Shown in pieces: positions 30,459 through 49,243 of a DNA stretch of 64,000 nucleotides (position 1 is its first letter; every line of letters begins with the position of its first letter). Both the position numbers and the translations under genes were made by a program. The stretch is taken from positions 124,001-188,000 of IMG/VR virus record IMGVR_UViG_3300047558_000137, one strand, 5' to 3'. The notes under the pieces were generated by a model that was not told the origin of the DNA, searched no databases, and was given only the letters and a program-made list of their open reading frames with translations.

Positions 30459-30677
30459 TTATTTATTGCGATATACTACACGACCGCGATTTAAGTCATA
30501 TGGACTCATTTCAACTTCTACACTGTCACCTAGTAGAATACGAATATTGTGTTGACGAAGTTTTCCGCCAATTGTGGCAGTAATCATATGATCGTTTTCG
30601 AGTTTAACTCTAAACATTGCATTGGGCAGTACCTCGTCAATTTTACCTGCCATGCGAATTTGCTCTTCTTTGGCCAT
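30459..30677 (-). CDS. infA: Translation initiation factor IF-1
   Basis: [25 protein letters not shown]...[25 protein letters not shown]. Confidence 0.95.
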
Positions 30678-33749: not shown

Positions 33750-34019
33750 TCAAGCCCATCGTAGGGCAAACGCTGTGGCGTCTGCTGGATGTTCAAAATA
33801 CCAATAGTTTTGCACCAATTTATAGTCGCCTGTTGCACTAATATGGACCCAGGCTGCAATTTCTACAATGGTATTTGTAATTTTATATCTTTCCATGCTG
33901 ACATTGGCCCTAGTCCATCCATCACCAATTAGTTTTTCTGCCATTATATTATCAATAATCTCTTGATCTATTTGGCGGGCTAAATGTGTCGAAGCCTCGT
34001 TGGCCCAATCATCTTTCAT
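33750..34019 (-). CDS. FxLRW-array protein
   Basis: Ends ADATAFALRWA. Confidence 0.75.
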   Translation of the reverse strand: MKDDWANEASTHLARQIDQEIIDNIMAEKLIGDGWTRANVSMERYKITNTIVEIAAWVHISATGDYKLVQNYWYFEHPADATAFALRWA

Positions 34020-34267
34020 GCCCATTTCAGTACAAATGCAGTATAGTCTTGATCTTCATCAAAGTATACACGAATTCTATAACCTCGCTCTGTACTTTCG
34101 TAGGTAGCACCAACTTGCTCAAGTTCCTCATCTAGGATTCTTTCTAACATTCCAGGAGGTGCAGTTGGTGTGCCAATACGGCGTCGCCATACATCCGCAT
34201 ACCAACGCTCAAAGTAGTTCTTGGGCTTATTACAGTTGATGTTCTGATAATACTCTTTTACAATCAT
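34016..34267 (-). CDS. FxLRW-array protein
   Basis: Ends DYTAFVLKWA. Confidence 0.75.
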   Translation of the reverse strand: MIVKEYYQNINCNKPKNYFERWYADVWRRRIGTPTAPPGMLERILDEELEQVGATYESTERGYRIRVYFDEDQDYTAFVLKWA

Positions 34268-34515
34268 GCCCACCTCAACAAAAACATCGTAAACTTTTGT
34301 TCATCAATCACACGGTAATCTTTCATGTTGTAATCTTTGTCTAACTTTACTTCTACACCGTATTCGATCAACACATGATGAAGTTGTGCGTCATAAACAG
34401 GATTGCCTGTGACTACTTTTGCTTCTGGGAGAACTGACCAATAATGATTTGGTGACGGTTGTCCCATACTTTCCACAGCTCGTGCCAATATTAGTTGTAA
34501 GTCACAAGATTTCAT
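34264..34515 (-). CDS. FxLRW-array protein
   Basis: Ends EQKFTMFLLRWA. Confidence 0.75.
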   Translation of the reverse strand: MKSCDLQLILARAVESMGQPSPNHYWSVLPEAKVVTGNPVYDAQLHHVLIEYGVEVKLDKDYNMKDYRVIDEQKFTMFLLRWA

Positions 34516-34943
34516 GCCCACCTCAACTTATAAAACACAAAATCTTTTTCGTCGCGAAAGTAGATTGCCCCGACCCCGCACCACCACCGACTCCACGCAT
34601 CTGGTTTGTTTGGATGTTTTCCGAAATGTTCTGTACACCATTTGATGATTTCGTTATACTCGCGGCCCAGGGGATAGATGCTATTGCTAATGTCAACAGT
34701 GTGCCATTTAGCCCGACTGAATTGGTATTTGGGTTTTGTAACAGGATGCATTGGTAAAAAGATTTCTTTACATAAGTTACTATCGTAGATTCTGTTTTTC
34801 AAAATCTTTGTGTACAAACTCTTACCAGTTTGACGGCCCACGCTGATTACATTTATTGTGCCAGCTGGGATACCACCAGCGGTATTACCTAACACAGTTG
34901 GCATCCATGTTTCAAGATCAACGGTGATTGTTTTATTTTTCAT
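34512..34943 (-). CDS. FxLRW-array protein with N-terminal P-loop-like remnant (VGRQTGKS)
   Basis: Ends DEKDFVFYKLRWA. Confidence 0.7.
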   Translation of the reverse strand: MKNKTITVDLETWMPTVLGNTAGGIPAGTINVISVGRQTGKSLYTKILKNRIYDSNLCKEIFLPMHPVTKPKYQFSRAKWHTVDISNSIYPLGREYNEIIKWCTEHFGKHPNKPDAWSRWWCGVGAIYFRDEKDFVFYKLRWA

Positions 34944-35224
34944 GACCACCTCAACAAAAATGCAGTAACTAACTTCTCATCGTAGAAGTAAATATAGCCG
35001 CCGCGATAGTCCCAGTCGCTGTGTTCTCCACCTGCTAGATCACTAAGTGGGTTACCGAGTTCCCACAGCCACCTATACAATCCATGTGGCCAATCGATTG
35101 GCGTGCGATAAGTTTCCCAGCGTTCTTGGGCAGGATTATAATCAAACCTCCACTCATTTTTAGCATGTTTGTGACGAATAGTAGCCAAAATTTTCTCCGC
35201 CGGTGTCAACGGTGCTAACATCAT
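34940..35224 (-). CDS. FxLRW-array protein
   Basis: Ends EKLVTAFLLRWS. Confidence 0.75.
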   Translation of the reverse strand: MMLAPLTPAEKILATIRHKHAKNEWRFDYNPAQERWETYRTPIDWPHGLYRWLWELGNPLSDLAGGEHSDWDYRGGYIYFYDEKLVTAFLLRWS

Positions 35225-35505
35225 GCCCACCTCATCAGGAACACTGCCTTATCACGCTCGTGCTTGAAGAAGATTGTTTCAAATCTCCAAATCCAATCGC
35301 GTCCAAAATGTTCTTCACACCACAGCATGATTTCTTCAAATGGTGCAGCACCATTATACTGCCAGTGAGAGAAATACTGACACACAATATTAACTGCGTT
35401 TGCGTCATTTGTATATAGGCAAGGAGTCTCTGCTACAAACTCCCGTAGACGTTCGCGGAGAGTGCTGTAAATCGAATCAACTTGCAGTGTGTTCTTTACT
35501 TTCAT
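35221..35505 (-). CDS. FxLRW-array protein
   Basis: Ends RDKAVFLMRWA. Confidence 0.75.
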   Translation of the reverse strand: MKVKNTLQVDSIYSTLRERLREFVAETPCLYTNDANAVNIVCQYFSHWQYNGAAPFEEIMLWCEEHFGRDWIWRFETIFFKHERDKAVFLMRWA

Positions 35506-35732
35506 GACCACCTCAACATAAAAAGAGTTGCTTTTTCCTTGCTAGTAAATTGCCACCAGGTCCCGATATAATTGTGACATTCTCTCCAGCCTGCACATTT
35601 CTTTCCGTTGCCAAAAGTGTCCCGGCACCAATCAAACATGTTATCGTATCCGTTTCGATCTGCATGTTCAAAGTCTAAATGTACGTGCCATTGCCATTTT
35701 CTAGCATCTTTTCTACGTTGTTTTGAGTTCAT
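35502..35732 (-). CDS. FxLRW-array protein
   Basis: Ends EKATLFMLRWS. Confidence 0.75.
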   Translation of the reverse strand: MNSKQRRKDARKWQWHVHLDFEHADRNGYDNMFDWCRDTFGNGKKCAGWRECHNYIGTWWQFTSKEKATLFMLRWS

Positions 35733-35914
35733 GCCCACCTCAATAAAAATGCTGTTAAATCTTGTTCAGTCTTATAGACTATACCGGTTGCAAAAGCATC
35801 GTATTCAGGTCTGCTGTTACACCAGTCATAAATTTCATCCCACTCAGCCGCAGAGAAATGAAAACTAATACCAATGTAATTGTAGCGATGATCGATTGTA
35901 AACTTCTGAGTCAT
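35729..35914 (-). CDS. FxLRW-array protein
   Basis: Ends QDLTAFLLRWA. Confidence 0.75.
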   Translation of the reverse strand: MTQKFTIDHRYNYIGISFHFSAAEWDEIYDWCNSRPEYDAFATGIVYKTEQDLTAFLLRWA

Positions 35915-36108
35915 GCCCACACCAATGCAAATAACGTAGCGTCTACTTGACGCACAAACTTAAATGTGTAATCCCAGTCGTCTTTAAAGTAATCTGGCTT
36001 TGTGAAGTTCCAGTCCTTATGCTGAACCAAATTTTGATGCATTAGCCATGATAATATATCAGGAAGAACCTGATCACGTTTAATGCTAACACAAACATCG
36101 TAAGTCAT
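35911..36108 (-). CDS. FxLRW-array protein
   Basis: Ends DATLFALVWA. Confidence 0.75.
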   Translation of the reverse strand: MTYDVCVSIKRDQVLPDILSWLMHQNLVQHKDWNFTKPDYFKDDWDYTFKFVRQVDATLFALVWA

Positions 36109-36314
36109 GCCCACTTTAACCTAAACCACATGGCATCCTGCTCACGCTCAAACCAAACATAGCGACCAGCATAATACAGATAGAACTTACCAGGGCTGTC
36201 ATGCAGTTGCAGTTCACGCTTGAGATTTCGATCAAAACGATCATGCATATCGGAAACACTGACTTTGTGCCAGCGTAGTTGGCGAATCCGTTTATCTTTG
36301 TTCCAGTATTTCAT
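36105..36314 (-). CDS. FxLRW-array protein
   Basis: Ends EQDAMWFRLKWA. Confidence 0.75.
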   Translation of the reverse strand: MKYWNKDKRIRQLRWHKVSVSDMHDRFDRNLKRELQLHDSPGKFYLYYAGRYVWFEREQDAMWFRLKWA

Positions 36315-36631
36315 GACCACCTCAATGATAACCAAGTCAATAGTTCTTCGCTAATGATATAACGGTCCCAGAATCCGGGCCTTGTTGCTTTTAATTCACC
36401 ATGTTTCCACATGTATAGGGCTTGTTGCTCTATCCAGTGACTGACCTCTCTATTGACATCTACGACTACATACCCTTCGGGTACAGTTTCATTATGATTA
36501 GTAACCGTAACCCATTTGGGTGGTGTTAGATCCATAGGCTGTACACCCACAATATCTTGTGCTATTAACTTGGGAAGAATTTTCCTAATCATAGGAATCA
36601 TTATCATTGGATTTTTTAATGGGTCTGTCAT
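36311..36631 (-). CDS. FxLRW-array protein
   Basis: Ends EELLTWLSLRWS. Confidence 0.75.
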   Translation of the reverse strand: MTDPLKNPMIMIPMIRKILPKLIAQDIVGVQPMDLTPPKWVTVTNHNETVPEGYVVVDVNREVSHWIEQQALYMWKHGELKATRPGFWDRYIISEELLTWLSLRWS

Positions 36632-36855
36632 GCCCACCTCAACAAAAATGCAGATGCCTTGGCATCATCATTGAACTTAAAAACCACAGCCCACTGATTG
36701 AACTCAAGATATTGCTCTTTAGTACCGGAACGTCGGTTAAATTTAGCAAAACTCCAATCCCATGTGCGAACATCGTTACCGAAAGTCTCAAAACACCAAG
36801 TCAGCTGTTGTGTCAATCCGACATCAGACTTTGCGTCCACGTTTACTTTAATCAT
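36628..36855 (-). CDS. FxLRW-array protein
   Basis: Ends AKASAFLLRWA. Confidence 0.75.
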   Translation of the reverse strand: MIKVNVDAKSDVGLTQQLTWCFETFGNDVRTWDWSFAKFNRRSGTKEQYLEFNQWAVVFKFNDDAKASAFLLRWA

Positions 36856-37103
36856 TGCCACCTCAACCTACATATTGTAGCATCTTTTTCATGCAAGAAC
36901 CAGACACTTCTCATAAACATTTTGTATGTGTGCGGGTCAAAAGTTTCCCGGCACCACGTGTTAATTGTTTCAAAATCGTGTTGCTTCCAGTTTAGTGCAG
37001 TCTCATACTCTGCACCTAAATGCCATCCAAACTCCGGGGCCTCGCAAGGAGTCATAGGAATCATAACCTTTTTACCGTCAATGTATGTCCACACTTCTGT
37101 CAT
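36852..37103 (-). CDS. FxLRW-array protein
   Basis: Ends EKDATICRLRWQ. Confidence 0.75.
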   Translation of the reverse strand: MTEVWTYIDGKKVMIPMTPCEAPEFGWHLGAEYETALNWKQHDFETINTWCRETFDPHTYKMFMRSVWFLHEKDATICRLRWQ

Positions 37104-37327
37104 AGCTTTAATAAAAACATTAGATAGTGTTGTTCATTGTGAAATGTCAAATAGTTGCGACCTTCTTTCCAGTTGTAGTATTGTCCAACATCGTATTTGT
37201 CATTGAGCCAGCGCCAAAGATTACTGTATCGTATTTGATCCTTAAGCCAGCTATCTTTAATCTGCTCGATATGAGCATCAATTGGAATCTTGTGTTTGAA
37301 CCAATGATTAAACAGATGTACTTTCAT
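37100..37327 (-). CDS. FxLRW-array protein
   Basis: Ends EQHYLMFLLKL. Confidence 0.7.
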   Translation of the reverse strand: MKVHLFNHWFKHKIPIDAHIEQIKDSWLKDQIRYSNLWRWLNDKYDVGQYYNWKEGRNYLTFHNEQHYLMFLLKL

Positions 37328-37569
37328 GACCACCTCAATACAAATGCTGTATGACTAGATTCATTGTCCCAACGTAAATACCATCCTTGTGTTTTTGTTG
37401 CAACAAACCGCCCGCCAACGGGACGAAGCTCATGGTTCATTACTGTACCCGGATCCCACCCATTGGCACGAGCAATAGTCTGACAATGTTTAAAAAAGTT
37501 ATCAAAATACTTGGGCCATGCATCTTCCCAATAACCTTTAGTAACATGTACTATAAACTTGTCAGACAT
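37324..37569 (-). CDS. FxLRW-array protein
   Basis: Ends SHTAFVLRWS. Confidence 0.75.
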   Translation of the reverse strand: MSDKFIVHVTKGYWEDAWPKYFDNFFKHCQTIARANGWDPGTVMNHELRPVGGRFVATKTQGWYLRWDNESSHTAFVLRWS

Positions 37570-37787
37570 TATGCCCACCTCAACATAAACATAACATAAT
37601 CACGTTCATCTTCAAAATAAAACACCGGCGATTCTTGATCTTCTTCTACGGCATGCCACTTAGTTAATGCCTGCGTGATTACATCACCGTTCTGCATATC
37701 GAGTCCTTGTGCTGTATGGTACTCGTAGAAGTTGCGCCACCAGTTGGTCCACACGCCACGCTCATTAATCACATTTACTTCAATCAT
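37569..37787 (-). CDS. FxLRW-array protein
   Basis: Ends RDYVMFMLRWA. Confidence 0.75.
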   Translation of the reverse strand: MIEVNVINERGVWTNWWRNFYEYHTAQGLDMQNGDVITQALTKWHAVEEDQESPVFYFEDERDYVMFMLRWA

Positions 37788-37981
37788 AGCCATTTTAATG
37801 CAAACATTGATGCATCAGCTTCATCTCGGAAATAAAATCCAGTATTCCCAAATGACGATTCCCAGGACCAACGATCTTGATCTTTACGATGCCAGACTGC
37901 GTAACCAAAATGTCGGATACACCAGGCTCGGATGATATCTATTTCGTGATAGCGATCCTTACCTAATACAAACTCAGTCAT
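37784..37981 (-). CDS. FxLRW-array protein
   Basis: Ends ADASMFALKWL. Confidence 0.75.
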   Translation of the reverse strand: MTEFVLGKDRYHEIDIIRAWCIRHFGYAVWHRKDQDRWSWESSFGNTGFYFRDEADASMFALKWL

Positions 37982-38274
37982 TGCCATCTCAGACTAAACA
38001 TCATGGCATCAGCTTCACGACGGAAGATAAAGACCAAATCGCTTTCTTCATCATCGCTAGCATCAACGTGCTGTATAACACCTTCAGCTTCTTGCTCAGT
38101 GGTAAGCTCAGGAACCTGCTCTACACGTTCTTCGTAATAGAACCAGTCCTCGATGCCCATCCAGGTGTTTTTAACAAAGCGGCGCGAACCAAGACCAATA
38201 CTGGCTCGGCACCATTCTTCGATTTCCACGAGCTTGTCGTGGTGCTTACGGTCTAGTTTGATAGTGGTTGTCAT
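37978..38274 (-). CDS. FxLRW-array protein
   Basis: Ends ADAMMFSLRWQ; leaderless promoter upstream. Confidence 0.75.
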   Translation of the reverse strand: MTTTIKLDRKHHDKLVEIEEWCRASIGLGSRRFVKNTWMGIEDWFYYEERVEQVPELTTEQEAEGVIQHVDASDDEESDLVFIFRREADAMMFSLRWQ

Positions 38275-38322
38275 AGCTGTATTATAGCATTTTTTGAATT
38301 TACAAAAAGTAGTACTAAAGTA

Positions 38323-38568
38323 CTAGGAAAACTTTAGCTTCCAGAGCAGGTATAACTCTGGCGTTAGATACAAGGCTACATTGCTTTCGGGCTCAGAGTC
38401 CATTGGCTTCCAGTACTCAGCATCTTGGCTGCGTATCCATTCAAACATGCCTGCGGGAGTTACAATGGATTCAAACTCTGGATCGTCGTAACAACTTGTT
38501 TTACCTTTGTAGCTAAACAGTTCATACTGTCCATTACGTGGCAAAAATTGTTTGTAAGTTACAGCCAT
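38323..38568 (-). CDS. FxLRW-array protein
   Basis: Ends PELYLLWKLKFS (TAG stop). Confidence 0.7.
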   Translation of the reverse strand: MAVTYKQFLPRNGQYELFSYKGKTSCYDDPEFESIVTPAGMFEWIRSQDAEYWKPMDSEPESNVALYLTPELYLLWKLKFS

Positions 38569-38747
38569 TTCAAATTGAACCATTCAATATGTGATTGTAC
38601 CATAAAACTATATCCTTCAGGTCCCGAAGATACATGCATATGGGCAACATCATTTTCTAACAGCCAGAGGACCATTTCAAGCCACTCTGGCGTTGTGCCT
38701 ATAGTATAGCAGTTTGGACCGTATCCGTATTTTTTAGTTAGTTTCAC
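38559..38747 (-). CDS. FxLRW-array protein
   Basis: Ends IEWFNLKWL. Confidence 0.7.
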   Translation of the reverse strand: MKLTKKYGYGPNCYTIGTTPEWLEMVLWLLENDVAHMHVSSGPEGYSFMVQSHIEWFNLKWL

Positions 38748-38934
38748 GACTGCCCCATTTTAACTTATACCAGGTATAAACATCTTCATCCATGTAGAGA
38801 TTCTCAAGACCATAGTCATACTCTGTGCCCCAACGACTGCTGTTCTCTGGACCAAAGTTTAAACCTAGCCAATGCCTAACATCCTGCTTTAGTTTCCAGT
38901 CCCAGTGTTCGATAACTATGCCATGTTGCTTCAT
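38734..38934 (-). CDS. FxLRW-array protein
   Basis: Ends YTWYKLKWGSRETN. Confidence 0.7.
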   Translation of the reverse strand: MKQHGIVIEHWDWKLKQDVRHWLGLNFGPENSSRWGTEYDYGLENLYMDEDVYTWYKLKWGSRETN

Positions 38935-39191
38935 AACCATTTCAACTTTATCAAGGTCAACAAATCTTCACGCACAATGTAGATAGCACGATGACGGCCA
39001 CCATAGCTACGCCACGTTGTTGTGTCTTGTTCTTCAATCCAATCACCAAACCAGTAGCTACATTGTATACGATACCATACATATCCATCAGGTTCTTTAT
39101 AGCCGTACTCGCAACCAGGCTCAACTTGATAGAGTCTGCTACTGTATCCTTCTGGTGGGTGTTTGGTATGAAACCACTCCTCGTAACTCAT
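38931..39191 (-). CDS. FxLRW-array protein
   Basis: Ends EDLLTLIKLKWL. Confidence 0.7.
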   Translation of the reverse strand: MSYEEWFHTKHPPEGYSSRLYQVEPGCEYGYKEPDGYVWYRIQCSYWFGDWIEEQDTTTWRSYGGRHRAIYIVREDLLTLIKLKWL

Positions 39192-39403
39192 GCAAATCTC
39201 AACAAAAAATAAGTTAAATCTTCTTGGCTTTTCAACTCGACGTAATTCTTGGTAGAATCACTAACAAACACACCTTGGCGCCAACGACGATTATCCCTGT
39301 CTTCTTGGATCCAATTTACAATGCTCCAATGTATGGGCGTGTCGAATGGAATTTGATAAGCAAACCCATCATATAGCTGTTTGTTGAGATTGAAATACCT
39401 CAT
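39188..39403 (-). CDS. FxLRW-array protein
   Basis: Ends EDLTYFLLRFA. Confidence 0.75.
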   Translation of the reverse strand: MRYFNLNKQLYDGFAYQIPFDTPIHWSIVNWIQEDRDNRRWRQGVFVSDSTKNYVELKSQEDLTYFLLRFA

Positions 39404-39612
39404 GACCACCTCAAAGCAAATAACACAGCATCCTGCTCAGATCTAAAATGCCACACAGTTTGGTCCCGGCGAAACATAGCACCCCTATAATCGTCCTGAC
39501 AATTTTGTTCGCACCATACAAACCTTTGATCCTTGCCCCAGACCCAACCACCCGAATGTGGAACTTCCACTCGATGACGGAGATCTCGATTGCGACTGTA
39601 TTTTGATTTCAT
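39400..39612 (-). CDS. FxLRW-array protein
   Basis: Ends QDAVLFALRWS. Confidence 0.75.
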   Translation of the reverse strand: MKSKYSRNRDLRHRVEVPHSGGWVWGKDQRFVWCEQNCQDDYRGAMFRRDQTVWHFRSEQDAVLFALRWS

Positions 39613-39869
39613 GACCACCTCAGCGCAAACATCATAGCATCTTGATCACATTCAAACTCAATGAACTTTTCTTTGAGATATCCGGGACTGTGATAGTAAG
39701 GATGTTGGCAGTTGTCTTCGAGCCATTGATTAACTAGATAATCTTTGTAGCTAATCTGCCATTGCTTTGGTACACCGTCAAAAGTATGGCCATAGACAAC
39801 ACGGTGCAACTTGGGCACCTTGAGAGTTTTTCCAATACCAAACTTTGTGTCTATGTAAGTTATTGCCAT
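39609..39869 (-). CDS. FxLRW-array protein
   Basis: Ends QDAMMFALRWS. Confidence 0.75.
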   Translation of the reverse strand: MAITYIDTKFGIGKTLKVPKLHRVVYGHTFDGVPKQWQISYKDYLVNQWLEDNCQHPYYHSPGYLKEKFIEFECDQDAMMFALRWS

Positions 39870-40132
39870 CTTAGTACAAACAGTGTTAAATCCGCTTCGT
39901 TACGAAACCAAAACTTGGCGCTGTTGGCATACCAACGAGCTGATGGAGTCCATACACCGTCTTCTGGAGTAGGACCAAATGTATCGAAACACCATTTTAG
40001 CATATCATTCCAATATTGATTATACCATCCGTGCCCTGAACCAAATTCAAATACTGGTGCAACAGTGTAATAACGTGCTCCATAAACGCGGCCTTCATTT
40101 ACAGTAAGCGTCACGCCTCCATTATGTGCCAT
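39860..40132 (-). CDS. FxLRW-array protein
   Basis: Ends ADLTLFVLRWQ. Confidence 0.75.
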   Translation of the reverse strand: MAHNGGVTLTVNEGRVYGARYYTVAPVFEFGSGHGWYNQYWNDMLKWCFDTFGPTPEDGVWTPSARWYANSAKFWFRNEADLTLFVLRWQ

Positions 40133-40461
40133 ACATTGATCTTTTCTTCTAGATCACGATTTTTCTTTGCAATCAAGTCACGTTCTTCACGTGCAACTTT
40201 TGCAATGCGTTCTGCGCTTTCAGTTCGACGCACTAGTTCAGCAGCCATATCTTCAATGGTACGTGCTTCTAGCATTTTAATTTCGTAACGTGCTTCTTTA
40301 AGCTGTCGTTCGGCATAGTCAACATCATTCTTTAGATGATCTATTTCATCTTCAAGATCAATAACTTTATTGTCATTGAGAATTATTTCGCACAGACGGC
40401 GAACAACAGGATCGTCTGTATAACGAAGATGGTAGTCGGCAAATTCTTTATCGGTTCTCAC
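40111..40461 (-). CDS. Coiled-coil hypothetical protein (non-family insert in array)
   Basis: GTG start after GGAG; heptad-rich. Confidence 0.6.
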   Translation of the reverse strand: MRTDKEFADYHLRYTDDPVVRRLCEIILNDNKVIDLEDEIDHLKNDVDYAERQLKEARYEIKMLEARTIEDMAAELVRRTESAERIAKVAREERDLIAKKNRDLEEKINVWHIMEA

Positions 40462-40724
40462 GAGTGTGCTCCAAACTTTAATGCAAACATTATAGCAGCT
40501 TCTTCCCATTCAAATTGAAAGGTAGCATAATCAGTGCCCCAAATATTTTGATTGTCGTTTCCGTTACGCCAATCAATATAGTAGCGTTTAAAATAAGGTT
40601 TGTCGCCAGTAGCATATTCATTGCACCATTCCATCATGGCAGTAATATCTGCTTTACGACTTACACGCACCTTATATATAAAGTCTGGGTTACTGCGACC
40701 GCCCTCGCTGTAAAATAATTCCAT
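40458..40724 (-). CDS. FxLRW-array protein
   Basis: Ends EAAIMFALKFGAHS. Confidence 0.7.
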   Translation of the reverse strand: MELFYSEGGRSNPDFIYKVRVSRKADITAMMEWCNEYATGDKPYFKRYYIDWRNGNDNQNIWGTDYATFQFEWEEAAIMFALKFGAHS

Positions 40725-40728
40725 AATA

Positions 40729-41109
40729 CTATTTCTCTGTTAAGGCACGAATTGTTTCGTATCGTTTAATTGCTTCTTCGACATCTTTCCATGCATCTTT
40801 TACAGCAGGATGAACGTCATTGTAACTATGATCTTGCGGATTATAACCGGGTCGAATTTTTATACTAGGTGGATCTTGCTTAACCCAGCCCTGAGGATCT
40901 GCGTCAGTCCAATAATAAACAATAGCAGAATTGCCCAAGGTAGAGCTTGAGTAGTCACGCCACTCATCTTTACGCTTGTCGTACCATAGATAACCATGGT
41001 CGCTGTCGCCGTCGCCTTTACCGCCCATGCCCCAACCGCGGTAGCAGAGATAGTAGTCGCTCTTACTAGGCTGACGTTCTTCTACTCTATACCAAATGCT
41101 TGTTCTCAT
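40729..41109 (-). CDS. Hypothetical protein (non-family insert)
   Basis: WYRVEERQPSKS.YYL; TAG stop. Confidence 0.6.
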   Translation of the reverse strand: MRTSIWYRVEERQPSKSDYYLCYRGWGMGGKGDGDSDHGYLWYDKRKDEWRDYSSSTLGNSAIVYYWTDADPQGWVKQDPPSIKIRPGYNPQDHSYNDVHPAVKDAWKDVEEAIKRYETIRALTEK

Positions 41110-41342
41110 GTTGCATATTTTAACACAAATATCAAATATTTTTGCTCGTCAACAACTTCAAGTGTATCACGCAGGTTAAAATCATCCTCGGCCACAGTTA
41201 ATTTAATACCATAGTTTACATTTAGCCAGCGTACAAAATCCTGTGTGCTGGGCTCATAATATCCAGTAAAAGTGGTGTCATACTCTTTTTTGGCTGCACG
41301 TAAGAGCATGAATAACTCTTGCCAGGTTGGAGTGTTAGTCAT
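41106..41342 (-). CDS. FxLRW-array protein
   Basis: Ends EQKYLIFVLKYAT. Confidence 0.7.
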   Translation of the reverse strand: MTNTPTWQELFMLLRAAKKEYDTTFTGYYEPSTQDFVRWLNVNYGIKLTVAEDDFNLRDTLEVVDEQKYLIFVLKYAT

Positions 41343-41556
41343 CTTTTAGTATATCAAATAATTCAGCGTATTCAACTTCGGGCTCCATGTGAAACCCGTT
41401 CCCCCATACCGCCCAAAAACGTTGTTTATATACAGTCTTTAACCAAACATATCTCCCGCCAATTGTTTTAACTGGCCAAATGGCAAAGGTCCGGCGCCAT
41501 GGATAGCAGTCGGCGCCATTGTATATGCGTTGGGTTATCAACATGTTATTCTTCAT
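41335..41556 (-). CDS. Hypothetical protein (non-family insert)
   Basis: WRRTFAIWPVKTIGGRYVWLK. Confidence 0.6.
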   Translation of the reverse strand: MKNNMLITQRIYNGADCYPWRRTFAIWPVKTIGGRYVWLKTVYKQRFWAVWGNGFHMEPEVEYAELFDILKDD

Positions 41557-41782
41557 TTTTCTGGATACAATTTAGAAACAAAAATGTAGTAAACGATTCA
41601 GTGTAAAGATCTCTGCGGATATAGATAGTATGACCTTGAGTAAACCAAGGGCGTTCGATGAACTTTTGGTAAGGATCATTATCGCCGTAGGCCTTACGCA
41701 GGCTGTCAATTACAGGCACCCAGTCTTGAGCTTTAAATTTTAAGTTAAAGTGTGTTTTTTTATAATGATTAAAATAACTCAT
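41546..41782 (-). CDS. Hypothetical protein, degenerate array member
   Basis: ESFTTFLFLN near C-terminus. Confidence 0.55.
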   Translation of the reverse strand: MSYFNHYKKTHFNLKFKAQDWVPVIDSLRKAYGDNDPYQKFIERPWFTQGHTIYIRRDLYTESFTTFLFLNCIQKNEE

Positions 41783-41988
41783 GACCACCTCAGTGCAAAC
41801 ATTGCGGCATCTTGTTCTAGTGCAAAGTAGTATACACGATTATCAGTAAACGGATGGTCTACCCCATCAAACTCATAGTTATAATCCGATACATTGTCCA
41901 ACAACCAAATACGCAGGTCCCTAAAGTGTCCAGTACTACGCCATGGCACACTGACTGGAATTGTACACCAATATTTTACAGGTCTCAT
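41779..41988 (-). CDS. FxLRW-array protein
   Basis: Ends QDAAMFALRWS. Confidence 0.75.
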   Translation of the reverse strand: MRPVKYWCTIPVSVPWRSTGHFRDLRIWLLDNVSDYNYEFDGVDHPFTDNRVYYFALEQDAAMFALRWS

Positions 41989-42212
41989 GCCCACCTCAAC
42001 ACAAACTCTGTAGCATCTTTTTCATTGTAAAAAAAGTAGTCGTGCCCGCCGGGTACACTAAAGATTGCATACAGGTTACGAATATGTTCAGTTTCGAAAA
42101 ATTCAAAATAACTGTGGTCATTTCGAAGGTCCAACACTTTCGAATGATCAAAGTGTATGCAGGTCCATCCTGCATTTTTAAAATCTTGATGACTTTGTGA
42201 GATCTGTGTCAT
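41985..42212 (-). CDS. FxLRW-array protein
   Basis: Ends KDATEFVLRWA. Confidence 0.75.
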   Translation of the reverse strand: MTQISQSHQDFKNAGWTCIHFDHSKVLDLRNDHSYFEFFETEHIRNLYAIFSVPGGHDYFFYNEKDATEFVLRWA

Positions 42213-42439
42213 GCCCACCTCAACACAAACATCATGTGATCGTCTGCACGCCTAAACTCAAACACCCCTTCGCCAACAAAGCGCCAGTTGCCATCTTTGA
42301 TTTGTTCAGCACACCATGTAATACAAGGAGTCCAACCTTGATAGTATGTGTTAACAATACCGCTGCCAATTGAATTAGGACCAGGTGCCGGCACACTTGC
42401 TACAATCCAACCATTGAGTTCATTTCGTGGAAGTTTCAT
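42209..42439 (-). CDS. FxLRW-array protein
   Basis: Ends DDHMMFVLRWA. Confidence 0.75.
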   Translation of the reverse strand: MKLPRNELNGWIVASVPAPGPNSIGSGIVNTYYQGWTPCITWCAEQIKDGNWRFVGEGVFEFRRADDHMMFVLRWA

Positions 42440-42657
42440 AACCATCTCAAACTAAACAAGGTTGCATCTTCGCCACGCTTGAATGCAAAGTAAGGGCCAA
42501 CGTTGCGCCACTCACTGCTCTTAAAGTTTTCGTAACACCAGCGTTCTTTGGCACCAGTATCATCTTTGACTTCTACATGGTACGGCCAATATTTCTTGTT
42601 TAAAACTCTCATAAGGTGCATCTCATTTCGTTTCTGTGTGTAGTAACTTAACTCCAT
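42436..42657 (-). CDS. FxLRW-array protein
   Basis: Ends EDATLFSLRWL. Confidence 0.75.
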   Translation of the reverse strand: MELSYYTQKRNEMHLMRVLNKKYWPYHVEVKDDTGAKERWCYENFKSSEWRNVGPYFAFKRGEDATLFSLRWL

Positions 42658-42878
42658 TTTAACACAAATTCCATTAAAGTTATATCATCGGCAAATAATA
42701 CAGTCATACCTTCTGATATTACTGTGTCTCTAGCATCGCACCAATCAGCAAATGCGTCGATATTATCTGCCCAAAATTTATAATCTGTCAGAATGACTAG
42801 TCGCTCGTCTGTATCCAATAATTCACTTGGAGCAATAATAAAACGGTGATGCCGCCACTCTTCAAATATATCTGTCAT
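42648..42878 (-). CDS. FxLRW-array protein
   Basis: Ends TLMEFVLKWS. Confidence 0.75.
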   Translation of the reverse strand: MTDIFEEWRHHRFIIAPSELLDTDERLVILTDYKFWADNIDAFADWCDARDTVISEGMTVLFADDITLMEFVLKWS

Positions 42879-43114
42879 AGATATTTGATCCTAAAGAATG
42901 TTTCTGCAGCCTCATCGTAGAAGTCTAAGCAGATCATTTCTCTATGTTGATGGCGGCCATCTGTATCGGTGACCCAGTCTTGGTGGTAGCGTGTAGTGAA
43001 TCCAAGTTCGCGCCGCATAACTTCGCGAATCATAAAGACGCTGGGCTTGGTCTTATATTCTTCTTTAATTCGTTTGCGTATGCGTGTCCATTCACGCTCA
43101 TTTAAGGATATCAT
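42875..43114 (-). CDS. FxLRW-array protein
   Basis: Ends AAETFFRIKYL. Confidence 0.7.
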   Translation of the reverse strand: MISLNEREWTRIRKRIKEEYKTKPSVFMIREVMRRELGFTTRYHQDWVTDTDGRHQHREMICLDFYDEAAETFFRIKYL

Positions 43115-43349
43115 ACTTTAACTTAAACCAAGTTGCATCAGATTCAGTTAGTGTTGCTACAATTTTGTACCTATAACTGTAGGTTGTATTATCTAAGTGC
43201 AGGGCCCAGTAAGGTTCTTCAACGGCATTTTCCATTACCCACTTACCAGCGTCAGTCTGTTGCCATTCCCAAATTGGTTGGGCAGCATATATTTCTGGGT
43301 CGTCTACATCGCCCATGCTGAAGGTGTGAACTATTAATTTTACCGCCAT
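43098..43349 (-). CDS. FxLRW-array protein
   Basis: Ends DATWFKLKYDILK. Confidence 0.7.
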   Translation of the reverse strand: MAVKLIVHTFSMGDVDDPEIYAAQPIWEWQQTDAGKWVMENAVEEPYWALHLDNTTYSYRYKIVATLTESDATWFKLKYDILK

Positions 43350-43522
43350 CGTAATGCAAATTCTGTGGCAGCTTTTTGGTCTGTAAAAGTAAACCTATAC
43401 TGCTCATTAAAAAGTGTTGTTTCAAAGTCCAGGGACCATGCAGATTCATCCAAATTCTTATTGCACCAGGTGGCCGCGAGCGTAGCTCTATTTGCACCAG
43501 ATACTGTAATAGTACTAATCAT
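43340..43522 (-). CDS. FxLRW-array protein (first in array)
   Basis: Ends KAATEFALRWR; TATAAT 8 nt upstream. Confidence 0.75.
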   Translation of the reverse strand: MISTITVSGANRATLAATWCNKNLDESAWSLDFETTLFNEQYRFTFTDQKAATEFALRWR

Positions 43523-43562
43523 ATGCGTATATTATAACGTATAACATCTTTATAGTTAAAAA

Positions 43563-44003: not shown

Positions 44004-44555
44004 TTAGAAATTACGTGTGTAACTAACTTTGACTACATTATTTTCTGTATCGCCTCTGATTCTATCAAAGCCAACTGTTACAGAATCGTTCTTGTTTAAT
44101 GGATAAGTTAAACTGGCACGAGCAGTATGTGTCTGGTCGGAATCGAGCTGCGTTGCTGAACGATATCTCCATCCCAATTTTGCAGTAAATGGACCAACTG
44201 GCATACTTACACCTGGTTCAACACTGTAATATGTAAAGTCTGTAGTGTTTGTATACTTCTGACCTACCCCGATACGAGTATATCCTTTAACTGATCCAAA
44301 TATAGTGTTTGTTGCAGTTAGACCAGCCTCAAGGCGTGTGCTTAATGCACCAGTGCCATCAGTAACTTGGTTACCAAAACCTACATCGGCAGCAAGTGTA
44401 TTGCTTAAATCGTGTTTGACAATTAAGCTGTACAGTTTACTATTTGCACCACCGGCTACTTGATTTGTGTAGTCAGCAAATTCAACAGTTGCACTTGAAC
44501 CTGCAAATGACAAGCCAGAGGCAACTAGCGATAACATTGCTAAAATTTTCTTCAT
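44004..44555 (-). CDS. Small outer-membrane beta-barrel (porin-like)
   Basis: Signal peptide, alternating amphipathic strands, C-terminal YTRNF. Confidence 0.7.
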   Translation of the reverse strand: MKKILAMLSLVASGLSFAGSSATVEFADYTNQVAGGANSKLYSLIVKHDLSNTLAADVGFGNQVTDGTGALSTRLEAGLTATNTIFGSVKGYTRIGVGQKYTNTTDFTYYSVEPGVSMPVGPFTAKLGWRYRSATQLDSDQTHTARASLTYPLNKNDSVTVGFDRIRGDTENNVVKVSYTRNF

Positions 44556-44616: not shown

Positions 44617-45168
44617 TTAGAAATTAAAGCCTAGACCAACACCAAATGCGTTTTCTTTGATAGTCTGACCTGAGCGGCTAGCATTCAAGTTGAACGAAAC
44701 ATCTTTTGTAACTGGAATGCTGTATGTAGCAAAACCAACTGTCTGTTTGGTACGTGCGCCAACTTCTGTTGAACCAACGCGAGTCTTAACACCGGTTAGC
44801 AAGAAACCTGGGCCAACTGGCAAACCGTATGTTGCACCAACTAGACCATAGTTGTAAGCTGTGCCACCGTTGAAGCCATTGTCATGACCTGCACCAACAA
44901 ATGGTGTGATGCCTTTAAAGTTGATACCGTTCTTTGCGGCAGTAACCTCAACACTAGACAAGATACCTGAATTGTCTTTCATTGTGGCTGTGCGGCCTTG
45001 CAAGCCGTATTGGATTCCGCCAATTTCCTTACCAGCACGAATGTATTGTGCTGTGCTATCGCCAGAACCATTACGACCTAAAACGTTATCAACGTCAACG
45101 GATACATAAGATACTGCAAAAGCAGAACTAGAAACGGCCAAAGCCAAGATTGCTAAAATTTTCTTCAT
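44617..45168 (-). CDS. Small outer-membrane beta-barrel (porin-like)
   Basis: Signal peptide MKKILAILALAVSSSAFA, C-terminal GVGLGFNF. Confidence 0.7.
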   Translation of the reverse strand: MKKILAILALAVSSSAFAVSYVSVDVDNVLGRNGSGDSTAQYIRAGKEIGGIQYGLQGRTATMKDNSGILSSVEVTAAKNGINFKGITPFVGAGHDNGFNGGTAYNYGLVGATYGLPVGPGFLLTGVKTRVGSTEVGARTKQTVGFATYSIPVTKDVSFNLNASRSGQTIKENAFGVGLGFNF

Positions 45169-45234: not shown

Positions 45235-46083
45235 TTAAATTTCAAATCCAAAAGTTGGATCGAAATCAGCGGCTCTTGACTCGTATCCTGCATAACCGCG
45301 TGGATTGCAAATAATACGAGTATCGCCAATTTGGTAGTCAAACGGATCATGTGTATGCCCGTGTGTCCAAACTCGAATTTCTGGATTGTCTAGAATAAAC
45401 TCTGACAAGTCACTGCTGTAGGCACCATTCATAATAGTGTCGTCGGCATAGTGCGGATGTGTAGATAACTTGCTAGGTGCATGATGTGTTAGTACAACCA
45501 CAGGCAAGGGGTTGTCACGTTTGCGGTTTTCTTCTAGATAAAACTTAAACAACTGTTTTGTCTTAACGTGTTCGGTAGTAGTATGCTCAGGAACCAAGCG
45601 ATGGTAAACACTCTTAGCTTCGTTAAGCATGGTAATCTGTCGGTAATCATTCATCATTGACTTCATATGATATAAGGTCAATTGATCAAAGTTGTTCATG
45701 TCGGTCCAGAGTGTGCCACCTAAGAATAATACTCCATTATATTCACAGGCTTCTTTTTCAAGCACTGTAATATTTTTAGGCAGCATATCTTTTAAGTGCG
45801 GCACAGTCTTATGGTAAGTGTAACCATAGTGCTCGTGATTGCCTACAACGTAGAATACCTTGTCGTACTTGCAACATTCTTCGTGGAAGAAGCGTGTCCA
45901 ACGATCCATACGCTTCATGTTGCCAGTGCTTGGCCCACCTTCGTTTAGAATGTTGTTTACATCGTACTCAGCTTTAACGTGCTTGGCTTCGCAGACATCG
46001 CCGGACAATAGTAGCACTTCGCCGCCAGGTAATTCGAGGTCAGCAAATTCAAGGTGCAGGTCAGAGATCACATTTATTTTCAT
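45235..46083 (-). CDS. Calcineurin-like metallophosphoesterase
   Basis: SDLH, GD, GNHE, THHAP, HGHTH motifs. Confidence 0.9.
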   Translation of the reverse strand: MKINVISDLHLEFADLELPGGEVLLLSGDVCEAKHVKAEYDVNNILNEGGPSTGNMKRMDRWTRFFHEECCKYDKVFYVVGNHEHYGYTYHKTVPHLKDMLPKNITVLEKEACEYNGVLFLGGTLWTDMNNFDQLTLYHMKSMMNDYRQITMLNEAKSVYHRLVPEHTTTEHVKTKQLFKFYLEENRKRDNPLPVVVLTHHAPSKLSTHPHYADDTIMNGAYSSDLSEFILDNPEIRVWTHGHTHDPFDYQIGDTRIICNPRGYAGYESRAADFDPTFGFEI

Positions 46084-46107
46084 ACACAGATTATAGTACT
46101 AAATTGA

Positions 46108-46476
46108 TTAGATGTCAACGAAACGGCGACTAGTTAATAGCCAACCAATTTGATTTAGATCTTGTTCAATTTCTTCTGTTACATAGCTTTCTTCGACAAA
46201 GCCAGCAAAGTCGGTTCCTTTGAACCCCGATCCCGATCCGTACCAAGAACGATAATCTTCGTGCTGTCGTATTTCAGAAACTATTATTGCGGCATTGTGC
46301 CAGGTTGTGTCCCAGGTAATATTAGTTAATATGCCCCAGACATCTTTTGGTTGATAAACATTGTTGCACAGAGCAGCGTATAAGTTCTGTGCGTATATTT
46401 CTTGGCGCTGAATCTTATCAACTACCCATGTAGTTGTTCTAATGTCACGTTCCAGATTAAAAACCCTGCGCCCCAT
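46108..46476 (-). CDS. Hypothetical protein, paralog of 52713-53093
   Basis: YAQNLYAALCNN...W...EDYRSWY...V.EE...DL..IGW. Confidence 0.6.
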   Translation of the reverse strand: MGRRVFNLERDIRTTTWVVDKIQRQEIYAQNLYAALCNNVYQPKDVWGILTNITWDTTWHNAAIIVSEIRQHEDYRSWYGSGSGFKGTDFAGFVEESYVTEEIEQDLNQIGWLLTSRRFVDI

Positions 46477-46497
46477 ATTGTATTTAATACAGGCAAC

Positions 46498-46525
46498 AAA
46501 AAAGCCCGCCTAAGCGAGCTTTTTG
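46498..46525 (-). terminator. Intrinsic terminator
   Basis: AAAAAGCTCGC-TTAG-GCGGGCTTTTTT on minus strand. Confidence 0.7.
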
Positions 46526-46549
46526 CTTTTAAAAGAAATAAGTCTAGTA

Positions 46550-46816
46550 TTAGACCAAACCCATTGCCAGGGCCTTGTAACCAGCGGCAATGATCTTGCG
46601 GCTAGCTTTACCATGACGGTACTCAGTAACGTGAACGCCGTTCTTGGCCTTACGTTGGTTTGCATAAATTGCAAAACCTGCTTGGCGCAAACGAGTTGCT
46701 TCTGCACTCAAGTTACCAATGCCAAAACGCTTTTTAGCTTCTGCGGCTGTCAAAGACTCACCGTCAACAACCAATGCCTTATAGGCTTTACCAGTTTTAG
46801 TTTTCAAATCAAACAT
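46550..46816 (-). CDS. Small winged-HTH DNA-binding protein
   Basis: LTAAEAKKRFGIGNLSAEATRLRQAGFAIY. Confidence 0.65.
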   Translation of the reverse strand: MFDLKTKTGKAYKALVVDGESLTAAEAKKRFGIGNLSAEATRLRQAGFAIYANQRKAKNGVHVTEYRHGKASRKIIAAGYKALAMGLV

Positions 46817-46899
46817 ATTAATTTCCTTAAAGTATTTGCTGTTAACGCAACAGCTAGATCTATTGTAACAACAGCAACACTACAAATCAAATATTTTGG

Positions 46900-48702
46900 T
46901 TAAACTCGTGTAATTTTATTTTTCGTTGAATACAACTTACGGAATATAAACTTTTTAAAGTCTTTAATATTTGGTGTGCTCGGCTCAATTTGGTACTGGA
47001 ACGCACCCCGATCCCACGTTTCTATATCAACATCAGTATCAACTGTTAAAGGATAAGATACAGAATCCCGATACATTGAATTAGTCTGTAGCTGATAGAT
47101 AGAATCGGGTATATTGGTTAAACTTCTGGCAACACTGGTTGTTAGGTCAAATGTAAGATCCAAATGATCGTAGAGATATTCGGAATTTAAGTTATGATAA
47201 AGCCCATGCCCATTTTTTCGAAATGATTCAAGATCCTTTATTTCCCCAGTTGATAGATATTGGTGTATAATATTTCTAGACTTGACAAACTGTTCGGCAA
47301 AGTCTCCTATGCGGAATTGTTCGAACAGTTGATCGTAGAATTGTCTATAGGATATACCTAATACGTTTCTGCAATACTTGGCATACAGATGACTATAGCC
47401 ATGTATGTGAAAATTAATAACAGTGGCCGCATATAGATAACCATCAACAATGTCATCTAGGCTCATAGTGTCGGTTGACTGTACCAATTCCATATCTTCA
47501 TCGATACCACGCCAGTCATCTTGGTGATATAGTGTAACAAAATCTCTTACTGTTACAGATTTAATACCATACTGCTGTCTGCTGGCAGGTTGAGATAATT
47601 CACTGTTTTCCAATAGTTGAGCAAAAAATACTTCAATGGTTTGATGCTGTCCCATTTCTAGCGTATCAGCTATGCCCTGCTTCCAGGACTCTAGTGTTTC
47701 ATTGGGCAGACCAATAATTAATTCTGTATAGGTTGGTATCTTGTGCTGTTGGCTCAACTTCATTAACTTCTGTACATCATTAATGGCAAGATTTTTACGT
47801 TTGATTGCATCTAAGGTATTGTCGTTGTTACTTTGTAATGCCACAGTAACACCTTTGCTATAAGGACCTATTACTCGCGCAATTTCAAATGCATTTTCTG
47901 AACTGTTCTTAGGATACTGAATATTGACAGAACTGATCATACTGTTATCTGCGGCCTCACGTATCATGTGTGCTATTTCAAGATCTCTTTTGAACAATAT
48001 ACCAAAGTTGGCATCTGCTACAAATATATGCACAACAGGATTTGCTCGAGCCCAGTCTAGTTCTGCTTGTATATGCTCTAACTGAAACTTTTTTATTTTT
48101 GAGTATGTAACTCCGCCCCAATCGCAAAACGTGCATGAATAAGGGCATCCACGATTGGTTTCTAATGTCATTGCCCAGACAAAGTTGGGATTGTCTTTGA
48201 CGATTTGATCAAACACTCCTGAGGTATATGCACTTGGAATGTCTAGGTCTTGTAGTCGTTGTCGTTGATAAAACGGTTCTATAGGTCGATTGGCAGCAAT
48301 GTCTCGAAGTATGGCAGTGAAGTTTTCCTCACCTTCGCCCATGATAATGCAGTCAATGAATTTATGCTGTATTAATTTACCGCTGGGTTCTGCTCCACCA
48401 AATACAATAACACAATCAGGCCAACGTTGTTTAATTTCTTGGGCCAATGTTAGACAATAATTTTTATTCCATATATAACAGCTAAACCCGCATAAGACAG
48501 GATCCGACATTCGTGCCAATACATCTTCAACAGGTTCTCTGCGGAATATAATATCAGCTAAATGGAATTGTTCACGTATGTCAGAAAAATGGGTTGCATA
48601 ACTCCATATGCAACCCACACTGTACGGTAGCCAATAAGTATTTTCGTCTCTATATTCAACACCGTACTGTGGTTGAAATAGATATACGTTTGATTTTGTC
48701 AT
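46900..48702 (-). CDS. B12-binding domain radical SAM protein
   Basis: LCGFSCYIWN, VFGG.EP, IMGEGE, ETNRGCPYSCTFCDWG (CxxxCxxC), ELIIGLPNET. Confidence 0.9.
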   Translation of the reverse strand: MTKSNVYLFQPQYGVEYRDENTYWLPYSVGCIWSYATHFSDIREQFHLADIIFRREPVEDVLARMSDPVLCGFSCYIWNKNYCLTLAQEIKQRWPDCVIVFGGAEPSGKLIQHKFIDCIIMGEGEENFTAILRDIAANRPIEPFYQRQRLQDLDIPSAYTSGVFDQIVKDNPNFVWAMTLETNRGCPYSCTFCDWGGVTYSKIKKFQLEHIQAELDWARANPVVHIFVADANFGILFKRDLEIAHMIREAADNSMISSVNIQYPKNSSENAFEIARVIGPYSKGVTVALQSNNDNTLDAIKRKNLAINDVQKLMKLSQQHKIPTYTELIIGLPNETLESWKQGIADTLEMGQHQTIEVFFAQLLENSELSQPASRQQYGIKSVTVRDFVTLYHQDDWRGIDEDMELVQSTDTMSLDDIVDGYLYAATVINFHIHGYSHLYAKYCRNVLGISYRQFYDQLFEQFRIGDFAEQFVKSRNIIHQYLSTGEIKDLESFRKNGHGLYHNLNSEYLYDHLDLTFDLTTSVARSLTNIPDSIYQLQTNSMYRDSVSYPLTVDTDVDIETWDRGAFQYQIEPSTPNIKDFKKFIFRKLYSTKNKITRV

Positions 48703-48714
48703 CAACCGTATTTA

Positions 48715-49233
48715 TTAGTTACTTACTACCCTTGCTACAGAATTAATAACACTGGCAATACGTCCGATATCGCGAAGTTGTTCTACGGTGTAGCCCATCT
48801 TCTTTAATCCTTCATAGTGTGCCTTAACACAAAAGTGGCACTTACCAACAATACTTGCAGCCAAACTATAGGCTTCAAAACGTTCTTTGGTTGTACCGCC
48901 ACTGGTACTGATAGCGTTCATACGCAACTGTGCCGGCAATCCTTTTAACTGCTCATCGTCGGCCATTTCAACATAAGGATACCATATGTTGTTTTGTGCC
49001 ATTAATGCGCCAGCCGTAAGTGCTGCCTGTGTTTCAGTTTTGTTGGCAATTTGGCTTTCCATCCAAGTCCATAGCTTGCTGTTACCTGTTGCAAAAGCTG
49101 CCGCTAAGGCCACAGCTTCTGCTTCTTCTACTGGTAGTGTGCTACGCTTGATTACTGCGTCAATGTTTAATTTTGTATCTTTTGCATAGTCAGGAATACT
49201 GGCTTCCTTTAATGCATCTACCCATGCTGTCAT
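48715..49233 (-). CDS. ahpD: Alkylhydroperoxidase AhpD
   Basis: IPDYAKDTKLN, MAQNNIWY, LAASIVGKCHFCVKAH. Confidence 0.9.
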   Translation of the reverse strand: MTAWVDALKEASIPDYAKDTKLNIDAVIKRSTLPVEEAEAVALAAAFATGNSKLWTWMESQIANKTETQAALTAGALMAQNNIWYPYVEMADDEQLKGLPAQLRMNAISTSGGTTKERFEAYSLAASIVGKCHFCVKAHYEGLKKMGYTVEQLRDIGRIASVINSVARVVSN

Positions 49234-49243
49234 TTTGTTTTCC

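Follow-up and report, generated by a model that had tools for sequence, protein, structure and literature searches.

An array of small genes occupies positions 33750-43522 on the minus strand of the window analysed here, a 64,000-nt stretch (positions 124,001 to 188,000) of IMG/VR virus record IMGVR_UViG_3300047558_000137, and is carried on a 374,314-bp uncultured viral contig. It consists of 40 consecutive small open reading frames (ORFs), including 36 members of one family with a shared C-terminal tail and four non-family guests, and is probably a translationally coupled, hyperplastic array of a large, unnamed family of small, soluble, tryptophan-rich phage proteins. The genes encode 60-143 aa (one gene encodes 38 aa or 62 aa from alternative starts), and together they measure 9,963 nt in a span of 9,773 nt, which amounts to a net overlap; intergenic DNA is limited to a 48-nt spacer at 38275-38322 and otherwise to a few bases. 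A hidden Markov model (HMM) built from the tail detected 36 members in the window, all within the array (E 4e-16 to 1e-5), and the next ORF scored E 0.38. The typical tail is F-x-F-x-x-E-x-D-A-x-x-F-x-L-[RK]-W-x-stop, and the variants LKW, LKF, LKY, LRF, and LVW are also present. An earlier note on this DNA had described about 36 mini-genes over about 10 kb with a shared C-terminal end, and non-family genes among them at 40.1-41.8 kb. The array is real and the HMM bears out both statements, the non-family genes being four ORFs without a match; the strand, absent from the note, is added here.

Two classes of junction connect these genes. The exact 15-mer TTGAGGTGGKCATGA was found by pattern search in 11 copies, all on the minus strand and all in the array, where none would be expected (34264-34278, and copies starting at 34512, 34940, 35502, 35729, 36311, 36628, 37324, 39400, 41985, and 42209); each copy encodes Leu-Arg-Trp-(Ala/Ser)-stop, with an ATG overlapping the TGA. 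GAGGTGG occurs 17 times in the window (4.0 expected), 16 of them in the array, and the five array copies outside the exact 15-mer lie on the same strand at 35227-35233 and from 36858, 37575, 39615, and 41785, the junction at 37575 having a 1-nt overlap of the TAATG type. In these 16 junctions (class A), the codons are Leu (NNG, TTG or CTG), Arg (AGG), Trp (TGG), and a variable residue x (NNA) followed by TGA, and the geometry is GAGGTG, 3 nt, and an ATG overlapping the stop, with a 5-nt spacer from GAGG to ATG. The GTG within AG-GTG-G and the downstream ATG share a reading frame. Both counts and this geometry had been given in the earlier note and were reproduced. That note knew a single junction type and held that LKW, LKF, and LKY variants lose the Shine-Dalgarno (SD) sequence, which proved incomplete: variants with AAA or AGA gain an in-codon ATG, and those with AAG keep partial pairing. 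The second type (class B) comprises about nine junctions on the minus strand (37978-37987, and those at 43349, 42657, 42445, 39869, 38940, 38568, 37793, and 34025), in which TGG follows an Arg or Lys codon AGA, AAA, or CGA, so that the two codons together contain an ATG and the genes overlap by 10 nt; the ATGA is also retained in several of these junctions. According to this codon arrangement, one position at the Arg/Lys-Trp pair can supply either an SD sequence or a start codon.

The junction census gave 21 overlaps of 4 nt (ATGA), eight of 10 nt, and one of 1 nt (TAATG), and a stop/start overlap was also found in 154 of 227 junctions of other phages. Successive genes are always offset by the identical frame shift, which would fit an SD-like site that causes pausing or frameshifting and leads to neighbouring ORFs being made as fusions, as would the few database relatives with two family domains in one protein. 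However, no slippery sequence was found, the stop codon and ATG are conserved at nearly every junction, and the loss of a stop suffices to explain the rare two-domain proteins, which leaves fusion by frameshifting with next to no credibility.

The nucleotide sequence of the junction is under selection, besides the peptide that it encodes. AGG makes up 4.2% of the Arg codons in the 48 background genes of the window and 9% in the bodies of the array genes, compared with 16 of the 22 Arg codons at the motif (73%, against a genome usage of 4%; p 5e-18), and the remaining six are all A-ending (AGA or CGA), each creating an ATG. The codon of x is A-ending in 26 of 31 cases, compared with 31% in the background, and TGA is the stop in 26 of 32 motif genes, compared with 11 of 48 background genes. 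The sharpest evidence is from related phages, at 14 loci which were fetched by protein similarity alone and carry no bias for the junction: of 57 Arg codons followed by an ATG at 2-12 nt, 53 are AGG, compared with one of nine that have no start nearby (p 7e-7), and this lone case carries a GTGA overlap. Where the residue is Lys and an ATG lies downstream, AAG is used over AAA in 13 of 14 cases.

The junction might instead be kept merely through the L-R-W-x peptide and shared ancestry, with no role for the next gene. The peptide is constrained indeed, since in one subfamily (60 orthologs) L87 and W89 do not vary and position 88 holds Arg or Lys, and the C-terminal helix belongs to the predicted fold. 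However, the strong excess of AGG at the motif and its dependence on a close downstream start codon speak against the peptide as the sole constraint, as does the codon of x, which stays A-ending and preserves ATGA while the residue itself is free to vary (A, S, L, Q, E, T, and others). The bodies of the members are only about 20-25% identical, so that synonymous sites have long been saturated. With the codon results, conservation through the peptide and ancestry alone is largely refuted and very improbable. TTG was also considered as an additional selected base and was rejected; the third-base G of Leu lies within GAGGTGG, and the TTG:CTG ratio equals that of the background. All conserved bases of the 15-mer are thereby explained, because the constraints of peptide, SD, and ATGA cover each of them. 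These codon statistics back the self-coupling reading of the earlier note with selection at the nucleotide level, and the coupling of the downstream gene is predicted from the same signals.

In the proposed mechanism, a ribosome ending one gene would be positioned to start the next, because an SD sequence and an overlapping ATG stand at the class A junction. The C-terminal helix of class A members would end in Leu-Arg-Trp-x, with the same codons doubling as the GAGGTGG SD and the overlapping stop and ATG, and translation of the next gene may proceed by termination-reinitiation or by SD-assisted coupling. In class B, an A-ending Arg or Lys codon would trade the SD for an ATG inside the Arg/Lys-Trp pair. 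In bacteria, overlapping ATGA gene pairs have been shown experimentally to be coupled, with a variable contribution of the SD (Huber et al. 2019, PMC6728339). The array is like these pairs in its co-directional genes, in its stop/start overlaps of 4 nt (21 junctions) or 1 nt, and in an SD within the upstream gene's 3' end, suitably spaced from the downstream start, and tight serial coupling would be expected from these features. Unlike in the described pairs, the signal is fused to a conserved protein motif and inherited as a module by thousands of members, the junctions are chained up to 40 in succession, and the Arg/Lys-Trp codon pair has a second state that provides a start codon in place of the SD.

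SD-type tetramers were found at -18 to -4 in 17 of the 48 background genes, compared with 1-3 of 48 in control windows, and this enrichment argues that the host of the phage reads SD sites. The background sites are AAGGA-type and never GAGG; the Arg-Trp codons give the junction SD its form. A sigma-70-like promoter match (TTAACT-17-TATAAT, 10/12 in a consensus scan) lies at 43531-43559 on the minus strand, 8 nt before the ATG at 43522, and an extended -10 box (TGcTATAAT) was read at 38281-38289, also on the minus strand and 6 nt upstream of the ATG at 38274; both are putative in function. Starting from these ATGs, a first proposed transcription unit of 22 genes would cover 38323-43522 (minus), with gaps of at most 4 nt except for one start-codon ambiguity and followed by the 48-nt spacer, and a second of 18 genes would cover 33750-38274 (minus), as judged from the gene chain and the internal promoter-like box. 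This suggests that the array has two transcription units whose first genes are near-leaderless or leaderless, with each near-leaderless ATG behind a TATAAT box. If there are only two such units, all other array genes would depend on coupling. Promoter and terminator matches in the array are near the expectation from shuffled sequence.

A TATAAT box 6-8 nt upstream of the ATG is present in many genes of the window, e.g., those starting at 43522, 38274, and 33718, suggesting that leaderless or near-leaderless mRNAs are frequent there, and about a third of the window genes have AAGGA-type SD sites instead. A 72-aa protein with an eIF-1A/IF1-type fold (PF01176) is encoded at 30459-30677 (minus), about 3 kb downstream of the array, and its conservation in a relative (L258) is 86%. 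A similar IF1-type gene is located at 11820-12038 of an unrelated jumbo-phage contig (L001), about 1.5 kb downstream of a mini-cluster, and such a gene could be relevant to unusual modes of initiation. A tRNA with anticodon CUA, labelled tRNA-Pyl by ARAGORN, lies at 52114-52189 (minus) and would be of the amber-suppressor type. TAG is the rarest stop codon (4 of 48 background genes) and ends genes at 43563, 40729, and 38323, in or beside the array.

The order of genes in the array varies among related jumbo phages. Five related contigs and several metagenomic ones retain the flanks (orthologs of the genes at 46550, 45235, 44004, 43563, and 33002), while their arrays differ strongly in content and order, and many of their members have no counterpart in the window; two further contigs (L004 and L005) are 100% identical to the window and so carry no comparative signal. 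The member at 39400-39612 (minus) served as the anchor of the comparison: its orthologs in five other contigs are 79-87% identical, with ratios of nonsynonymous to synonymous substitution rates (dN/dS) of 0.09-0.14 and different neighbours in each, at least four different upstream neighbours being found across the six genomes. Recurring blocks are limited to two genes, such as 39860-39609 and 38931-38734. In blastn alignments, a homology block extends to the stop codon of the shared gene (offset 0 to -2) and starts 13-53 nt inside the tail of whichever gene lies upstream; a few chimeras have breaks inside gene bodies. The tail and junction are the sole repeated DNA in the array (38-56 nt, 60-79% identity, 20 copies). 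Comparison of array order among relatives with conserved flanks had been proposed in the earlier note as a check, and the order is not invariant. That note's view of the 15-mer as micro-homology for shuffling holds in so far as genes are shuffled with boundaries at the stop and junction; selection of the 15-mer as a recombination site is unsupported. Shuffling of cassettes at the junctions is thus supported by these alignments at a resolution of about 50 nt. According to the proposed mechanism, every member would carry the shared tail and junction (roughly 15-55 nt), and recombination within shared tails would gain, lose, and reorder whole genes; it is placed there because tail and junction are the only repeated DNA in the array.

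A further alternative is that tail and junction form a dedicated, selected recombination element, comparable to the attC sites of integrons or to the PeSLs of T4-type phages, turning every gene into a mobile cassette and possibly giving excised circles, with only a secondary role as ribosome-binding site. The relatives vary in order and content with boundaries at junctions, the element is the sole repeat in the array, and PeSLs, repeated intergenic units of a sigma-70-like early promoter and a terminator stem-loop, provide a precedent for the shuffling of modules in T4-type hyperplastic regions, with mini-circles (Arbiol et al. 2010, PMC2839356; Comeau et al. 2014, PMC4122927). However, peptide, SD, and ATGA already account for all bases of the 15-mer, the TTG:CTG ratio included; no stem-loops, attC-like repeats, or recurring inverted repeats were found in the array, no integrase or endonuclease family is among the precomputed Pfam matches within 10 kb on either side, and AGG is lost in terminal members. 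We therefore regard a dedicated recombination element as unlikely. The array is like PeSL regions in its small, non-essential, mostly uncharacterised genes, in content and order that vary between relatives, and in exchange boundaries at a short repeat (here resolved to about 50 nt). It differs in having neither a stem-loop nor a repeated promoter and terminator unit, nor any intergenic DNA except two spacers, its repeat being coding sequence and translation signal, and the genes shuffled are largely of one family. By analogy, its shuffling would resemble PeSL shuffling in outcome, without intergenic cassettes. Integron arrays are similar in that small, mostly promoterless genes are read serially from one end with cassette-like turnover, whereas the present genes overlap, with no recombination sites between them and no attC-type inverted repeats.

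The family extends far beyond the window. A scan of viral contigs with the 15-mer gave at least 118 loci, in many of which 2-6 copies share a strand, and the family HMM detected 450 members in 102 of 122 other viral loci, with up to 14 per fetched stretch; 351 of the 450 end in L-[RK]-[WFY]-x-stop, with junction types as in the window array. On one metagenomic contig, 40 members lie within about 13 kb. A profile search returned at least 2,934 clusters at 50% identity (E up to 0.001) of proteins of about 60-160 aa, and the matches always reach the last residue. Six relatives of 136-161 aa (P0156, P0158, P0166, P0222, P0247, and P0250) match the profile twice, as if adjacent array genes had been fused by loss of the junction stop. 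Searches of Pfam-A, PHROGs v4, NCBIfam 20, and PADLOC 2.0 returned no family match except for a capsid fragment in one member, and the PDB gave no significant match by sequence (best E 0.56) or by fold (best E 0.85), while matches in BFVD are only to uncharacterised proteins of uncultured Caudovirales. Cultured phages gave no DNA match to the array or a flank by megablast and blastn, and none by tblastn to the best-conserved member. Cellular genomes gave no match in a subfamily profile search, and the 21-nt junction pattern has 116 single matches in them, compared with about 140 estimated by chance, three being genuine. The family is large and unnamed by databases, and no prior description of it was found in the literature. 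Translational coupling and hyperplastic phage regions are already known, and the array is a variant of them in an undescribed family.

The array genes encode real proteins under purifying selection, as the dN/dS of orthologs between this phage and its relatives is 0.08-0.28, the members that share only the tail included. The array proteins are soluble, mostly acidic, and rich in Trp (5.6% versus 1.7%). The earlier note had called the genes paralogous, and this stands for only about 20 of the 36, which show homology beyond the tail. In leave-one-out HMM searches without the last eight residues, 13 of 36 members ranked first, and in profile-profile comparison by hhalign about 10 members are robustly related (at least 90% probability), about 10 probably so (50-90%), and about 16 show nothing detectable, common descent of all 36 bodies thus being only a possibility. 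In about half of the members, what is conserved goes beyond a terminal peptide to a small folded domain.

The best-conserved member (90 aa, 39860-40132, minus) represents a widespread subfamily with many metagenomic homologs of 50-76% identity, and its AlphaFold2 (AF2) model (pLDDT 85.8) consists of a beta-hairpin, a helix, a second beta-hairpin, and a C-terminal helix, with buried aromatic residues. A divergent member (42875-43114, minus) with the tail F-R-I-K-Y-L resembles the others in sequence in the tail alone and has 14 orthologs in other phage loci; its AF2 model (pLDDT 90.9) has a helix and two short ones, followed by a long beta-hairpin and a C-terminal helix, and hhalign relates it to the main subfamily with a probability of 42% (E 2.7e-4). 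The two models are confident and share a core of helix, beta-hairpin, and C-terminal helix, as judged by the order of secondary-structure elements rather than by superposition, and they match different BFVD proteins. For the tail-only member at 37569-37793, a deep homolog search yielded two homologs. The member at 36311-36631 (minus) is chimeric: residues 10-35 (nt 36527-36604) correspond to the N-terminal segment of a T4-type major capsid protein (Pfam Gp23, 29.1 bits versus a cutoff of 24.4, profile positions 7-32; PHROG 'major head protein') and are joined to the family tail. An ortholog with 69% identity was found in another phage (L075), and it is therefore a maintained gene rather than debris. 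N-terminal extensions such as GRQTGKS in 34512-34943 were considered as terminase fragments, for which Pfam and NCBIfam gave no support.

The earlier note had also proposed that the proteins are diversified effectors docking through their common end. In this view, which is compatible with the coupled array, the C-terminal helix would be a docking or targeting signal to one partner (a chaperone, some host machine, or, as for T4 internal proteins, the capsid), and the proteins an arms-race repertoire, e.g., for anti-defence. The extreme turnover of the array combined with strong purifying selection in each subfamily fits it, as do the tail being all that many members have in common, the proteins nearly always ending one residue past Trp, and the capsid-protein fragment in one member. 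However, no match to any anti-defence, defence, structural, or solved protein was found in the general family, defence-system, and structure libraries scanned, and in the models of well-conserved members the tail forms the final helix of a compact fold that buries aromatic residues, rather than a free peptide; the exact end one residue after Trp is explained by the ATGA overlap. Docking is thus a possibility that we do not favour. As the most likely guess at the role of the proteins, and a tentative one, they may be early accessory or host-interaction factors under diversifying pressure.

The polymorphic internal-protein (IP) genes of T-even phages likewise encode diverse small proteins with a short shared terminal motif that targets them to the capsid, and lie in a hyperplastic locus; their targeting signal lies at the N-terminus and is removed by cleavage as the head matures. 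As in those genes, the shared coding segment of the array could serve as recombination homology, whereas here the shared part is C-terminal and lies within the fold.

Several observations weigh against the coupled-array explanation or limit it. About 40% of the junctions work without GAGG, and the SD is thus not essential. The family members in cellular genome bins come from only three Bacteroidota metagenome-assembled genomes, on short contigs (L222, L226, and L243), the carriers being Flavobacterium, Bacteroidetes UBA11400, and Crocinitomicaceae; they are probably co-binned phage DNA and a weak host hint. Bacteroidia ribosomes disregard the SD at initiation (PMC7797042, PMC9976891), and the junction element may therefore act differently in some hosts. 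The large flanking proteins show weak, partial matches to jumbo phages of Alphaproteobacteria and to Campylobacter and Pseudomonas phages, and the flanking genes weakly resemble those of Proteobacteria phages. The breakpoints are resolved only to the conserved tail of about 50 nt, and selection for intact genes alone would likewise put boundaries at gene ends. A metagenome scan for near-identical relatives had a best match of 82% identity and thus gave no recent insertion or deletion, and the roughly 16 members that share nothing detectable past the tail count against a single family of bodies.

A bolder reading takes tail and junction as a portable plug, made up of the last helix, the SD, and the overlapping stop and start, in a gene nursery, with the family being partly polyphyletic; we hold this to be a minority possibility. 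If it were true, any coding segment recombined onto the tail would become a stably folded and automatically translated member of the coupled operon, unrelated N-terminal bodies, including fragments of essential genes like that for the major capsid protein, would have been fused to one C-terminal module, and the dual-coding junction would be the unit propagated by selection and recombination across thousands of phage genes.

With the array, a very large phage protein family is defined (at least 2,934 clusters, up to 40 tandem copies in a genome, and about 10 kb of coding sequence here). Its junction is an unusually clean natural case of dual coding, with a peptide motif and an initiation signal in the same 15 nt, and a second dual-coding state swaps the SD for an in-codon ATG. 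The coupled-array explanation gives a testable model of how accessory regions of phages may gain and shuffle genes without intergenic regulatory cassettes, and the junction may be a ready-made module for serially coupled operons. Should the proteins turn out to act in host interaction or counter-defence, the family would offer a large new source of such factors.

The 36 members detected by the tail HMM, all on the minus strand, follow one another in the direction of transcription. The first nine are located at 43340-43522, 43098-43349, 42875-43114, 42648-42878, 42436-42657, 42209-42445, 41985-42212, 41779-41988, and 41106-41342, and members 10 to 18 at 40458-40724, 39860-40132, 39609-39869, 39400-39612, 39188-39403, 38931-39191, 38734-38940, 38559-38747, and 38323-38583. 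Members 19 to 27 are located at 37978-38274, 37784-37987, 37569-37793, 37324-37569, 37100-37327, 36852-37103, 36628-36855, 36311-36631, and 36105-36314, and the last nine at 35911-36108, 35729-35914, 35502-35732, 35221-35505, 34940-35224, 34512-34943, 34264-34515, 34016-34267, and 33750-34025. The guest genes, also on the minus strand and without a match to the family HMM, lie at 40111-40509 (coiled-coil-like), 40729-41109, 41335-41556, and 41546-41782; their segment (40111-41782) is interleaved with the members at 40458-40724 and 41106-41342, and they have orthologs within the arrays of other phages. An ORF of 199 aa on the plus strand (36607-37206) is antisense to four array genes, is unsupported as a gene, and is probably a by-product of the codon composition of the opposite strand. 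The GC skew of the plus strand is lowest over 34000-42000 (-0.13 to -0.18, compared with about -0.05 in most of the window), which fits a G-rich, Trp-rich coding strand.

Just upstream of the array, two tandem paralogs of 183 aa are encoded at 44004-44555 and 44617-45168 (minus), one of which has a borderline match to a Gram-negative porin (Porin_4, 27 bits, exactly at the cutoff). Further upstream, at 45235-50016 (minus), lies an auxiliary-looking cluster with a metallophosphatase, a B12-binding radical SAM protein (46900-48705), CMD, DUF6552, and an AhpC/redoxin-type protein.

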